Assembly (NCBI GenBank): GCA_020536535.1
Contig: JAHLWZ010000445.1
Span: 1-37,446, forward strand
DNA: 37,446 bases
Direction: 5' to 3'
Source of the DNA: Pelomyxa schiedti
Lineage: Eukaryota; Protista; Evosea
Part shown: piece by piece, positions 3,049-6,890 of the stretch
Numbering within the stretch: position 1 is the stretch's first letter
How the letters are laid out: each line of letters opens with the position of its first letter
The notes under the pieces: model-generated
Database searches by the model: none
The model's input: only the letters and a program-made list of their open reading frames with translations
Told to the model about the DNA's origin: nothing
Position numbers and translations under genes: made by a program

Positions 3049-6000
3049 TTAGAGTGCACTGTTTGGTGTGGGGGATGAGGTACGGGATTTCTTTGTGGAT
3101 GTTGTGCCGGCTGTTGATTGTGGGTTTAGTTGTGGTCCTGCCGTTGTGATGGGAGGGAGTGTGGGATTGGAAAGAGGAGGAGGCCTTTTATGAGGGAGTG
3201 ATGTGAAGTTGGAGAAGAACGAAGAGTCATCCTCCTCGTCATTCTCACTACTGATACCACCACTGGCTGTTGAAGCGGTTGTTGCCTCACAAGGGGGCGT
3301 GTTTGCGGTGGGTGTTGCATGTGATTCGTTTGTTGTTGTGGCGGTGGAAGAGGTGGTGTCACTGGAGTGTGATTCCGCTGAACTTGTGGTTGCTGATGTG
3401 GAATTTGTTTGATGATTGTGGTGCATTGGTGTGGTGCCCACGTTGGTTGGCGGTTGTGCCAAGTTTTGATTGAGGATGCTTGTGATTGTATCGAAATCGG
3501 GTCTGACCTGTTGTTCTTGGTCCCAGCACTGATGGTAGACGAAGAAGAAATTGAGTATTCAGAAAGGGTTGAGAAAGAGTGAAACCTTGAGCATCAGTTG
3601 GTACATGAACTCCGGAGTGTTGGGGGGTTGGGGTAGCCGGTAGCCTCTCTCAATTTCCGATATTATTTCAGCTGCACGCATGGGCTTATAAGGCGACTTG
3701 CCGCCGCTGTACATTTCCCACAGAAGCTGGGGTTCGTTCAGATGTCTGTCAGGGGTGGGTAGAATACCACTTACAACGCCAAAGCTCCAGACATCACTCT
3801 TCTTGGTCGTGATGCAATGCTGCAGGGTTTCTATCGACGCCCAAGGAACTGACGCATTTCGCATAGTGTTATTATTGCCAGGGCTGAGAACCTTCACACT
3901 GAGTCCAAAATCTGCAATCTTTAAGAGGTTAAATTTACCGTGGTTAAAAGGCAGTTACTAACCTTAAGTTGCATCCCTTTGCTGAAGAAAGTATGGAAGT
4001 ATTGTGAACGAAATTATGCCATCAAAGAATTGAAACTACCTCCCACTCATGCAAAATAAAATGTTTCCTGGGTGATGGAGAAAATGAACGTTAAAATCAG
4101 TAACAAGAAGGCATACTGGCGGCAAGGTCTCTGTGCCAAGATTAAGTCAAAATCCAGTTGCATTTGAGATACCTGTGGAGAATCGAGTTTCTGTGAAGAT
4201 ATGCCATTCCACAAGATATATCTCTTTACATTCGATCACTTAGGGAAAAAACGAACTTTTGGCAACATTGAAAAGTCAAGGAGCGTAGTAAACTGTTGCT
4301 CTTCTGTCCTCAAGTAGTTTAGTAGACAGCCATCCGCCAATTCTAGTCCGGTGTATTGTTTGTTATATTTAAGCTTAATATTTACGTTGGAATATTTGTT
4401 TACCAGTGACAAGGGAGAGATGTGCATCCACCATTGAAAGTCCGTAAAACTGTGCCGCAATAAGAAAAAAAAAGACTCATAGCAGCATCAGAAATAACCT
4501 GAATGATATTTGGATGACATAGTTGACTAAGGAGAGAAGCTTCGCTTAGAAGATCGGGCATATTGGTTACTTGAAAAACTTGTTTCACGGCAACAGGTGT
4601 GGTTCCTTCCCAATTACCCCTGTACACCTATGTGCAGTTACTTTCCCGAGGAAAAATTGGAAAAGAAATACCACTCCGAAGGCACCCTGCCCAAGTACAT
4701 TGCTGGTCATCACACCGTTGATCATCAACTTTTTAAATGACACTTTGGATCTTGCAAGAAGTAGTTTCTCCAGGGACAAAGGAGAGAGGCCCAGCTTTTC
4801 AAATCGGTCCCTATTTGATTGTTCATATTGAGAGGAACTTTGCAACGAACAACTTTGGTAACTGCTGCATGTCTCGTACAGTGACTTGGTTGTGCGAAAG
4901 CAAGTCTATGTAACTTTCCAGGCCATACTCTGAGAGTGCTTCTTTGGAGACAACTGTACAGAATTCTTATGGATGAGGAAGGCGTGTGTATAAACCTTCA
5001 GTTTCTGTGGGAGTGGAATTGTTCGGTACAATACTTCCAGTTAAATCAGTTTTGCCAGAGGGTGGTAGAGGTAGCGTAGATAGAGAGCCTGTTTCCTGAG
5101 TGTGCAGATGTGCTGGGGGTACTTGATGAACTATCAGGTTGGGGTTGGCCCCCCCACAATCAATGGAGCAGCATTGACAGCCTGTCCTATCCTTTCGACC
5201 TTCAGGAATTTGACCAACAATGCTTGAAGAGCTCGTGCAAGGTGACGTTGCAGACATTGCAGAAGAAAGGGTTTCTGGTGCTGTGTTGGACATTACGGAA
5301 AGGGTTTGAGAGGCTGTAAGTTGAGTGAGTGTTTGTTTCATTTTTGTGTAAATTGCTGTGTTTTTCAGGATGCCCCCAATAGAATTTGCAACAAGCTCAA
5401 CCAGGTCAATTACTTCTGGTGTGAATTTATTTGGCTCATAATCAGCAAGCTGTGGCACACGGGCGTTATTTTGAACAATAAGAAACAGTACACACGCACG
5501 TGAATGAGGCCAATAGCTCTTGTTTCAACAAATATCGGTACTAGTAGTATTGATAAAAACTTTTCCTTTAGGCACACCCCACGAATTTTACATCCTGTGT
5601 TTGTTACCTACGACAGATAAATTACTTCACATTTGAAATGAGTTGAGGGACTTGATTACCACATCGAGGTCCAATGAAGAATCTCCATTGTTAGTTACAA
5701 ATGAACCGCGGTGTGAGAACCAAGGTCGCCCAGGTTCTGTTATGCCAAGGATAACTGTTCCACACCTTGAGATTTATAGTTTATTTGTGTTCCCTCTTTG
5801 GATAAGATGTACATGCAATCCAGTTGATAGGGTAATGAGGTTCCTACAAAGGTTGAGTTTCTCCCATGTTGCACATACACTTACCGCTATTAAGCATTCT
5901 CTTGCCATCAACACATTTTACAAGTGAATTTTCAGTCCTTAGAAAGTCGTCAGTGAATCCCTCACTACAGTAAAAAGGGAAGTTCCCACGGTCCACCAGA

Positions 6001-6775
6001 TCAAGCAGGCGAATGGCACCACTGTTGCACTTCTTGGGGGATTTTAGTTTGATGTGATTATTGATTACAATCAGAATACAGTATCTGATCGTAGCATGGA
6101 TAGACAAGTGCGTATTGACGAGTCAAGAGATGTACCCTTTGACTGCAGCTGGACAAGAATTAGCATTAGCTAACTCTAAATGAGGTTTGATACTAGTCAG
6201 ATACATACAGTAGCCTGATACACCCTAACTCTCCTCTCCATCTTAATCAGACCCTTCAGTCTCTGCACATCACGTATATCCTCTAAATCGAATCACAATT
6301 GCAGGGGAATTTATGCTGAAAAGCAAAAAAAAAAAAAAAAACTGCGCCCACCAATATCAATCACAGGCATCCTCGCACCCCTGCCGCCCCCACCCCCGCA
6401 TACTACACCCCCACCCCCACCACCACCACCACCCCCCCCGCACCCTCGGCTCCCGCCCACCCCATTGCCAACCAGCCCGGGGCCAGTCCCCACTATTATC
6501 ACCGTCGCCGTTGGGCCCCCTTCCCCCCCTCCTCCTGCCCCGCAGCTGCATGGCGACAGCCGCCCCGGGGCCGAGGGCGCTTTGCCACAGCAGCACCCTC
6601 CCCCTCCCCCTCTCGTTGCGCCCCCCGCGCCGCAGCACCCCCCTCCCGCTCCCGCTCCCACTGCCCCACTGGCTGCTGCTGTTGCGAGAGTGAGGGTTAG
6701 CGCCGTACACGGGCATTCCGCCCGCGTCCCTTCCCCCTCCCCCGTTGTGTGGTTGTTGGGGGGCGTTGTGGCCAT
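3049..6775 (-). CDS. Cytosolic GAF-SAM-tyrosine kinase with Gly/Cys-rich N-terminus and Ser/Thr-rich tail
   Basis: Spliced kinase: LGQGAFGV|VYRGNWEGTTPVAVK, H|RDLAA|RNIL, IADFGLS, SVPWASIE, KSDVWSFGV, GGKSPY, ERGYRLPQP, CWDQEQQVRPDF. SAM at about 4770-4950: LSEYGLESYIDLLSHNQVTVRDMQQLPKDRFEKLGLS. GAF at about 5362-6035, ending SILLVPIFVETRAIGLIH|LADYEPNKFTPEVIDLVELVANSIG. The splice linking exon 1 (ATG 6775) is less certain. Confidence 0.85.
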
Positions 6776-6890
6776 CTCGCTGAAGAAAATAATCAACTGT
6801 ATGGAAGGCTGAAATTTTCGTTATCGTCGCTCAGGATGGTGTGTTATGGTTGTAAAGAAAACACCACAAGGGAAAAAAAAAAAGCAAAAC
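6776..6890. promoter_or_regulatory. Putative bidirectional promoter (115 bp between divergent ATGs)
   Basis: Lies between ATG 6775 (-) and ATG 6891 (+); contains an A-tract. Inferred from gene layout only. Confidence 0.4.

Follow-up and report, generated by a model that had tools for sequence, protein, structure and literature searches.

The window analysed here is the whole stretch of 37,446 nucleotides (nt) of contig JAHLWZ010000445.1 from Pelomyxa schiedti (assembly GCA_020536535.1), and the subject of this work is a minus-strand gene within it (positions 6370-3049), which by exact protein-to-genome mapping encodes the deposited P. schiedti protein KAH3762634.1 (791 residues; referred to below as P0001). 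We consider it likely, and the best overall explanation of the results, that this is a genuine nuclear gene in which a cysteine-containing GAF sensor domain derived from prokaryotes has been joined to a tyrosine kinase. The product of such a gene would be a soluble sensor kinase consisting of a single polypeptide, in which an N-terminal helix is followed by a Cys-rich GAF domain, a low-complexity linker, a SAM-like module and a Src/Tec-like kinase. The protein itself is already known, as it has been deposited in GenBank, where its name ('Protein tyrosine and serine/threonine kinase') refers to the kinase alone, and its precomputed Pfam domains in the protein database do not include a GAF domain; what is new here is the tyrosine-kinase architecture, proposed to have formed via fusion of a laterally acquired sensor domain. 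The same architecture recurs in two P. schiedti paralogues (P0042 and P0078) and in two genes (L038 and L040) of a second eukaryote.

The coding region of KAH3762634.1 is made up of 20 exons separated by 19 GT-AG introns of 41-69 nt, and this gene structure is typical of the genome, as P. schiedti averages 7.4 introns per gene, of which 98.4% are GT-AG (PMC8887013). The initial annotation of this DNA, made from its letters without database searches, had placed a GAF sensor at 5362-6035, interrupted by four GT-AG introns (5884-5844, 5812-5766, 5659-5608 and 5499-5450, i.e. 41, 47, 52 and 50 nt, all GT..AG). All four are reproduced exactly in the deposited model. Their removal leaves a single open frame of 161 codons, in which the quoted residues of the spliced peptide are found, and KAH3762634.1, the top match of an exhaustive protein search in which exon 1 alone was the query, contains this peptide residue for residue. 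The motif CMCG is formed only after splicing, as had been claimed, with the 47-nt intron interrupting the codon for Met114, between Cys113 and Cys115; if this intron is retained, the reading frame meets a stop (open reading frame (ORF) 5740-5880). However, although a GAF domain is indeed located in the annotated span, its limits and intron content needed correction. Exon 4 starts at 6032, the first AAG of the span being the end of the upstream intron, and the domain is larger than 5362-6035, since it opens with a helix encoded by exon 3 (6148-6080) and extends as far as the end of its last helix, near 5339. In addition to the four introns described, a fifth (6079-6033) is also present inside the domain. 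Downstream, splicing of similar introns (42-61 nt) maintains one frame through the linker, the SAM-like stretch and the kinase, and a single deposited gene model contains both partners of the proposed GAF-kinase fusion without interruption of the frame. The BLASTP alignment with a bacterial GAF is unbroken across every splice junction, which provides independent support for the splice model. Further, the corresponding sequence LDCQCG in L040 is contiguous in one exon, and therefore the C-x-C-G motif does not depend upon splice prediction. Pfam searches with single exons (50, 35, 36 and 154 residues) gave no GAF signal, as is expected at such lengths. In view of these results, it is virtually certain that the gene and its GAF-kinase architecture are real. 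The features of the gene, all on the minus strand, are as follows.

3049..6370, minus strand: whole coding region of KAH3762634.1 (protein-to-genome mapping)
6209..6370, minus strand: exons 1-2, residues 1-31, N-terminal helix (tblastn alignments to L038 and L040; P0042 sequence)
5339..6148, minus strand: GAF domain, residues ~32-222, exons 3-8 (BLASTP, alignments A1 and A2, AlphaFold2, Foldseek, Pfam)
6148-6080, 6032-5885, 5843-5813, 5765-5660, 5607-5500 and 5449-5339, minus strand: GAF exons 3 to 8
6033..6079, minus strand: fifth intron within the GAF domain, 47 nt, GT..AG (mapping)
5844..5884, minus strand: intron of 41 nt, position common to L038 and L040
5766..5812, minus strand: intron of 47 nt, common to L038, not present in L040
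5608..5659, minus strand: intron of 52 nt, position common to L038 and L040
5450..5499, minus strand: intron of 50 nt, position common to L038 and L040
5572..6029, minus strand: span of the conserved cysteines (column counts in 175 prokaryotic and 5 eukaryotic domains)
6029-6027, 5915-5913 and 5817-5815, minus strand: codons for Cys56, Cys94 and Cys113
5764-5762, 5592-5590 and 5574-5572, minus strand: codons for Cys115, Cys155 and Cys161
4997..5338, minus strand: Ser/Thr/Pro-rich linker, residues 223-336 (P0001 sequence)
4720..4996, minus strand: SAM-like segment, residues ~337-400, exons 9-10 (sub-threshold Pfam SAM_1 and weak PDB sequence matches)
3475..4707, minus strand: tyrosine-kinase catalytic domain, residues 405-650, exons 10-20 (Pfam PK_Tyr_Ser-Thr, PDB sequence matches, motifs)
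3049..3474, minus strand: low-complexity Ser/Thr/Pro-rich C-terminal tail and stop codon

The identification of the domain as a GAF domain, proposed originally from its motifs, is borne out by both sequence models and structure prediction. The Pfam GAF model PF01590 matches just above its cut-off of 22.4 bits, scoring 22.6 bits with the whole protein and 26.1 bits with residues 30-225. GAF domains possess a central antiparallel sheet, one face of which is covered by the N- and C-terminal helices and the opposite face by the helices and loops that form the pocket. An AlphaFold2 model of residues 36-225, built from alignment A2 (predicted local distance difference test score, pLDDT, 81.5; predicted template modelling score, pTM, 0.82), gave 272 matches at E<=1e-3 in a Foldseek comparison with the PDB, and all of those listed, with target-normalised TM-scores of up to 0.77, are GAF domains. 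The structural neighbours are generic GAFs, cyanobacteriochromes, DosS/DosT and free Met-sulfoxide reductases. On the basis of this model and the Foldseek results, the Pelomyxa domain has the GAF fold.

The GAF domain of P0001 very probably belongs, as judged by sequence comparisons, to a subfamily of prokaryotic type. In BLASTP it aligns over ~175-190 residues with both GAF domains of P0020, a metagenome-derived bacterial-type hybrid histidine kinase with the arrangement PAS-GAF-PAS-GAF-HisKA-HATPase-REC (32% identity; E 6e-31 and 2e-28), a likeness far beyond chance, and 33 invariant columns are common to the Pelomyxa and bacterial GAFs in alignment A1. When a GAF alignment was scanned by tblastn against one genome per prokaryotic species, 37 loci were identified, with 28-38% identity over ~140-190 residues (E 1e-17 to 3e-29), and their genomes represent at least 13 prokaryotic phyla. 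These loci are from Smithella, Syntrophales, Geobacteraceae, Desulfobulbus, Desulfobacterales, metagenome-assembled genomes (MAGs) labelled as Myxococcota, Spirochaetota, Bacteroidota, Lentisphaerota/Victivallales, Verrucomicrobiota, Kiritimatiellia, Nitrospirota, Omnitrophota, Endomicrobiales, a Clostridiaceae MAG, Methanosalsum and a Methanoregulaceae MAG. The relatives anticipated in methanogens and in Desulfobacterota/syntrophs are thus present; however, as seen from the entries for the Spirochaetota, Bacteroidota, Lentisphaerota, Verrucomicrobiota, Nitrospirota, Omnitrophota and more, the subfamily is spread more widely than had been stated. Most of the lineages that carry it are known as anaerobes. 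The database check suggested at the outset had the predicted result, as clear relatives from beyond the amoeba lineage were limited to sensor proteins of prokaryotes, methanogens and deltaproteobacteria among them. Of ten host ORFs scanned, nine are PAS/GAF histidine kinases (HisKA/DHp and HATPase_c) and one ends in GGDEF; in these prokaryotic ORFs PF01590 is matched over its full length (positions 1-133). A word-index search with the Methanosalsum GAF retrieved at least 784 clusters (E<=1e-10), whose outputs are histidine kinase, GGDEF and HD-GYP domains and whose source names are generic only ('PAS domain S-box protein'), and 138 further prokaryotic domains all score 64-98 bits against the Pelomyxa GAF.

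The consensus measured for the prokaryotic relatives, viz. ..FDAVGIRL..DFPY..GFSDDFLLTENTL..LECTCGLVISG..NPLFT.GGSFWTN..PRN.CIH.GYASVAL.PI, corresponds nearly letter for letter to the motif list that the initial annotation had given. Examples of the subfamily include the 'signal transduction histidine kinase' of Methanosalsum zhilinae (P0095), the Geobacteraceae proteins OGU03279.1 and MDU0458921.1, and MBI5589333.1 from a Deltaproteobacteria bacterium. Like these proteins, the Pelomyxa GAF contains GDFPY..EGF..FL..EN.L, L[ED]C.CG, GSF.TN and R..C, together with Cys113, Cys115 and Cys161. Unlike them, its output is a eukaryotic tyrosine kinase and not HisKA/HATPase, GGDEF or HD-GYP; it is not preceded by a PAS domain; and it possesses the additional invariant cysteines Cys94 and Cys155, five spliceosomal introns and a very long branch. 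No NCBIfam model exists for this four-cysteine subfamily, and a PDB sequence profile search detected only remote generic GAFs and no close relative; the subfamily is therefore uncharacterised. The spacing of the conserved residues in the prokaryotic members (L001-L037 and P0082-P0200) is C-x12-C-x-C-x~45-C-x-H.

The distribution of the cysteine residues was determined by column counts in 175 prokaryotic and 5 eukaryotic domains, using P0001 numbering. Cys113, Cys115 and Cys161 are found in 172, 175 and 173 of the 175 prokaryotic domains, respectively, and each of them in all five eukaryotic domains, and 160 of the 175 prokaryotic domains have at least four cysteines among positions 56, 101, 113, 115 and 161. 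The majority of the prokaryotic domains also contain Cys101 (152/175) and His163 (151/175). The eukaryotic domains contain Leu101 and Lys or Arg at position 163 and hence do not show the majority-type combination of Cys101 and His163. Instead, Cys56, Cys94 and Cys155 are invariant in all five, with Cys94 and Cys155 being limited to eukaryotes. In this regard, the eukaryotic domains resemble a variant group of 14 prokaryotic domains of Geobacteraceae type, as like them the Pelomyxa GAF has Cys56 and lacks Cys101 and His163. Cys56 is found in 5/5 eukaryotic and 13/14 variant domains vs 15/161 other prokaryotic domains. Both Cys101 and His163 are absent from all five eukaryotic and all 14 variant domains, whereas among the other prokaryotic domains Cys101 is present in 152/161 and His163 in 151/161. 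In raw counts the association of Cys56 with the lack of Cys101 is strong; however, because it comes largely from one clade, it was counted as a single evolutionary event. In the secondary structure of the model, Cys94 and position 101 belong to a hairpin, a short helix begins with Cys113 and Cys115, and Cys155 and Cys161 are placed in a loop and short helix ahead of the last two strands. GAF domains bind their ligands on the side of the sheet where these cysteines fall.

Phylogenetic trees were constructed for 44 domains, for 180 domains (a quick analysis) and for an 80-domain subset (a careful analysis). In the 44-domain tree, the five eukaryotic GAFs form a single clade (support 100/100) with a long stem, within which there are two subclades, each containing a P. 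schiedti gene and a gene from the public run ERR12015700 (the source of L038 and L040). As both subclades hold both species, the duplication is older than the split of the two organisms. The prokaryotic phyla are scrambled in this tree, as expected for a mobile sensor domain. In the 180- and 80-domain trees, the eukaryotic stem joins the group of 14 variant domains, the named members of which are Geobacteraceae, Geobacter sp. and a Deltaproteobacteria bacterium, and the split of eukaryotes plus variant domains from all others is supported by 94/90 in the careful tree and by an SH-aLRT (approximate likelihood ratio test) value of 87 in the 180-row tree. Based on these sequence relationships, transfer of the GAF domain from a prokaryote to a eukaryote is highly probable; transfer in the reverse direction was also considered and rated low. 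The lateral acquisition from anaerobic prokaryotes that had been proposed is therefore backed by both distribution and phylogeny; however, the donor can be placed only tentatively, and the chances that it belonged to the Geobacteraceae-type variant group appear about even.

With regard to eukaryotes, the genuine matches of the exhaustive exon-1 search were P0001, its two P. schiedti paralogues, P0020, and short exon-like ORFs (84 and 56 residues) of ERR12015700/ERZ21831265, and no other annotated eukaryotic protein with this GAF was found in it. Word-index searches from the GAFs of P0001 and P0042, which cover close relatives of 215-1384 residues, returned only the query, and literature searches retrieved no description of a GAF/tyrosine-kinase protein in Archamoebae. 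The paralogues KAH3744675.1 and KAH3733013.1 (P0042 and P0078; 390 and 396 residues) have GAF domains 47% identical to that of P0001, after which come a SAM-like stretch and the beginning of a kinase. They have been deposited as 'Blue-light-activated protein' and end after the kinase glycine loop; their gene models are probably truncated and misnamed. The contigs that carry the ERR12015700 ORFs are eukaryotic: Ras, synaptobrevin and UBX genes are neighbours of these ORFs, and tyrosine-kinase exons follow them. By tblastn and splice search, two complete GAF/SAM-like/tyrosine-kinase genes with introns of 37-43 nt were recovered from ERR12015700/ERZ21831265 (GC content 38-41%), viz. L038, on the 104-kb ERZ21831265 contig ctg80361l (ENA), and L040, from the Logan assembly of ERR12015700. 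The two genes are orthologue-like, and their source is probably another Pelomyxa-like archamoeba. Intron positions after residues 103, ~149 and 185 are common to P0001, L038 and L040, and the intron that splits C-M|C-G is common to P0001 and L038. The earlier inference that the introns signify nuclear integration and not contamination holds, as the domain contains five spliceosomal introns, three or four of which are common to the paralogues and species. The remaining matches of the exon-1 search (70 of 77) were rejected as artefacts, being HAMP-like repeat proteins whose scores sum many stretches of less than ~13 bits; that a 50-residue query gave ~70 such proteins with E-values down to 5e-24 is a general caution for phmmer searches with short queries. 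L041, the sole match in a metagenome scan with a eukaryote-only alignment, was likewise discarded as a chance 12-residue match.

The output domain of this protein (residues 405-650) matches Pfam PF07714 (PK_Tyr_Ser-Thr) with an E-value of 7.7e-72, and among the PDB sequence matches listed all 60 are tyrosine kinases, including an EGFR construct (1e-90), a Src/Abl ancestor (2e-53), ITK, BTK, Src and Lck. The motifs GQGAFG, VAVK, HRDLAARN, DFG, SDVWSFG and CW..RP.F are all present, and from this completeness (HRDLAARN, DFG etc.) it is predicted that the kinase should be active. Its sequence places it in the true tyrosine-kinase group, as had been stated for the output of the fusion, and it is of animal type and Src/Tec-like. 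Similarly to the Src/Tec/Abl cytoplasmic kinases, which its catalytic domain matches best (E ~1e-50) and with which it shares HRDLAARN, DFG, SDVWSFG and CW..RP.F, it is a kinase of this type; unlike them, it lacks SH2, SH3 and PH domains and an activation-loop tyrosine, and its regulatory part consists of the GAF and SAM-like regions. Pfam detected neither HisKA/DHp nor HATPase_c in P0001. For the SAM-like segment only four PDB sequence matches were obtained, all of which are SAM domains (E 0.3-1, weak), and for the linker (residues 223-336) Pfam gave only a chance-level match. Within the first ~30 residues, a motif L+.L[IL]+.ERR[VI]+.Y is kept in a paralogue and in the second eukaryote; all family members have this helix motif, and the helix probably serves as a dimerising helix before the GAF. 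A Cys-rich patch, GCQCCSIDCGG, is located in the disordered linker (residues ~283-292; 5158-5129), and SCSCG is found at a similar place in L038; this patch could be a lipidation or metal-binding site.

The history of this gene that we would propose is that an ancestor of Pelomyxa acquired the GAF domain from a prokaryote (the Cys56 variant group being the most likely donor), that the acquired domain then gained spliceosomal introns and was joined to a resident SAM/tyrosine-kinase cassette, and that the fused gene was duplicated before P. schiedti and the second eukaryote diverged. The redox, metal, heme or gas sensing suggested in the initial annotation stays tentative, and is narrowed here to a conserved four-cysteine site. 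As to its function, the maintained tetra-cysteine site, in which the fourth ligand can be relocated, and its occurrence in mostly anaerobic lineages suggest a metal or iron-sulfur (Fe-S) centre or a redox switch, and sensing of metal, Fe-S or redox state by the Pelomyxa GAF is a possibility that, from the residue pattern, we rate slightly below even. In such a mechanism, a metal centre would be held by the four cysteines, which face the pocket of the GAF domain; we prefer an oxygen- or redox-labile Fe-S cluster, with a thiolate-bound metal or a thiol/disulfide switch as alternatives; a change at this site would, with the help of the SAM-like module and N-terminal helix, shift the geometry of the GAF dimer or its oligomerisation; and the altered dimer or oligomer state would switch kinase activity in trans. 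The more specific proposal that an oxygen- or redox-labile Fe-S (or thiolate-metal) centre on Cys56, Cys113, Cys115 and Cys161 directly gates the tyrosine kinase is doubtful at present and is put forward tentatively.

Sensors with some likeness to this arrangement have been described. The GAF domain of chloroplast sensor kinase (CSK)/Hik2 ligates a redox-active [3Fe-4S] cluster, and in CSK, which like the Pelomyxa protein retains a prokaryotic sensor in eukaryotes, a conserved cysteine helps to hold the cluster that gates kinase activity (PMC6949291). However, the Pelomyxa GAF differs from that of CSK/Hik2 in its lineage and cysteine pattern, and CSK, unlike the Pelomyxa protein, descends from a histidine kinase and came with the plastid by endosymbiosis, not by free lateral transfer. 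MsmS and RdmS of Methanosarcina acetivorans are heme-based and thiol-based redox sensors with PAS/GAF domains (PMC6944256). For MsmS, phosphorylation on tyrosine has been reported (PMC6944256), the autokinase claim having been revised later (PMC11784639). The likeness in this case, drawn by description only, lies in cysteine-dependent redox sensing with PAS/GAF domains in a methanogen and in a kinase part that is not a classical histidine kinase; in contrast to the Pelomyxa protein, their output is a HATPase-type domain and not a eukaryotic protein kinase. No Methanosarcina acetivorans protein is named among the 120 listed matches of the word-index search with the Methanosalsum GAF. In MsmS, the GAF domain that binds heme is GAF2, with Cys656.

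Several of the observations weigh against the above interpretation of the origin, architecture and function of this protein. The PF01590 match covers only the C-terminal third of the Pelomyxa domain, GAF_2 and GAF_3 (PF13185 and PF13492) score below their cut-offs, and the SAM_1 (PF00536) score of 18.0 bits (E 0.004) is below its cut-off of 23. The splice junctions rest on the deposited model, homology and conservation. The prokaryotic sample, which was picked by two peptide patterns and word sharing, is biased, and all of the GAF trees are unrooted. Further, the eukaryotic stem is very long (~2-2.8 changes per column), and the mean identity to the Pelomyxa GAF is lower for the variant group than for typical members (29% vs 33%); due to this, the union of the eukaryotes with the variant group (94/90, not starred) could reflect long-branch attraction or convergence at the ligand positions, and it is not fully secure. 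Cofactor binding by the four-cysteine subfamily is an inference from the cysteine pattern, and the placement of the cysteines on the pocket side is read from the order of secondary-structure elements in the AlphaFold2 model. Lastly, the disordered linker of ~110 residues that lies between the GAF and SAM-like regions in this paralogue disfavours rigid helical signal transmission of the histidine-kinase type, and for this reason control via the dimer or oligomer state is favoured over rigid helix coupling.

Two other explanations of the origin of the domain need to be considered. If DNA of a symbiont had been joined to an amoeba kinase gene by chimeric assembly or contamination, then a prokaryote-like GAF could also be observed here, and the source material makes this conceivable, as the P. 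schiedti genome was obtained from amplified single cells in polyxenic culture, and Syntrophus and Methanoregula symbionts live in this species (PMC8887013, PMC10579272). However, the GAF region contains five spliceosomal introns that match in size class the 14 elsewhere in the gene, the same fusion with intron positions in common is found in two paralogues and in an independent assembly, and the identity to any prokaryote is only ~30-38%, so that the probability of this explanation is negligible. Alternatively, the domain could be old and vertically inherited in eukaryotes, its prokaryotic likeness being due to convergence or retention, and it is consistent with this that in the unrooted trees a branch sets the eukaryotes apart from the rest, with no deep nesting. 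Against this, no other annotated eukaryotic protein appeared in the exon-1 and word-index searches, there are 33 invariant columns with bacterial GAFs (A1), homology extends over the full domain, general GAF models barely match the Pelomyxa domain, and the subfamily occurs in at least 13 prokaryotic phyla; vertical inheritance is thus very improbable, although less so than a chimera, and a lateral origin is preferred.

In terms of function, the GAF could sense nothing and could have served since the fusion as a dimerisation or scaffold module, with its cysteines structural (e.g. a Zn site) or irrelevant. The loss in the eukaryotic clade of Cys101 and His163, which most prokaryotic members have kept, the very long eukaryotic stem, and the long disordered linker between GAF and kinase are all in keeping with this possibility. 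However, six cysteines are invariant in five eukaryotic sequences that are otherwise 47-59% identical, and bacterial sensor kinases show the same arrangement of Cys56 in place of Cys101; because of these two facts the site looks like one that is maintained and not one in decay, and we regard a non-sensing GAF as improbable. Slightly less improbable, yet still unlikely, is that the cysteines bind or ligate an organic cofactor (heme as in MsmS/DosS, bilin or a small metabolite) and not a metal or Fe-S centre. The heme-binding DosS/DosT and bilin-binding cyanobacteriochrome GAFs are among the structural neighbours, Cys161 in the model is predicted to sit on a short helix before the long strand pair, roughly at the position of the phytochrome-type chromophore cysteine, and MsmS provides a precedent as a heme-based methanogen sensor with PAS/GAF domains (PMC6944256). 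In this case, however, the domain has no more than 9-16% sequence identity with the GAFs that bind heme or bilin, and a set of four cysteines, the fourth of which can change place, is more usual for a metal site than for attachment by one thioether bond. A metal, Fe-S or redox site thus remains the preferred, albeit tentative, function.

The usual switches of tyrosine kinases are extracellular ligands or protein modules of SH2/SH3 type. If a bacterial-type sensor of small molecules, metal or redox state is wired to a tyrosine kinase in this protein, it would represent a new input logic for phosphotyrosine signalling, and the GAF-tyrosine kinase occurs outside animals and their close relatives. 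It would also provide a clean case of lateral transfer at the domain level into an anaerobic protist of a syntrophic consortium, followed by intron gain and duplication. The prokaryotic relatives constitute an unstudied class of four-cysteine GAFs acting upstream of histidine kinases and cyclic di-GMP enzymes, and as the subfamily has no curated NCBIfam model, solved structure or functional source name, finding the ligand of one member would annotate all of them. Should gating by an Fe-S or metal centre prove to be correct, then the Pelomyxa protein would be a eukaryotic one-component sensor, 'redox to phosphotyrosine', built from a bacterial input domain, and a large class of four-cysteine GAF sensors would be defined in anaerobic bacteria and methanogens.

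Two further observations pertain to the flanks of the gene. The deposited start codon (6370) sits within a longer open frame (6311-6796), which opens ~135 codons upstream (MATTPPNN...) and whose upstream extension has an extremely high content of Gly, Cys and GC (6400-6720). Either the protein may truly begin further upstream, or 6400-6720 could represent GC-rich simple sequence 5' of the gene. A scaffold gap, marked by a run of N at ~2454-2560, lies a short way downstream of the gene.

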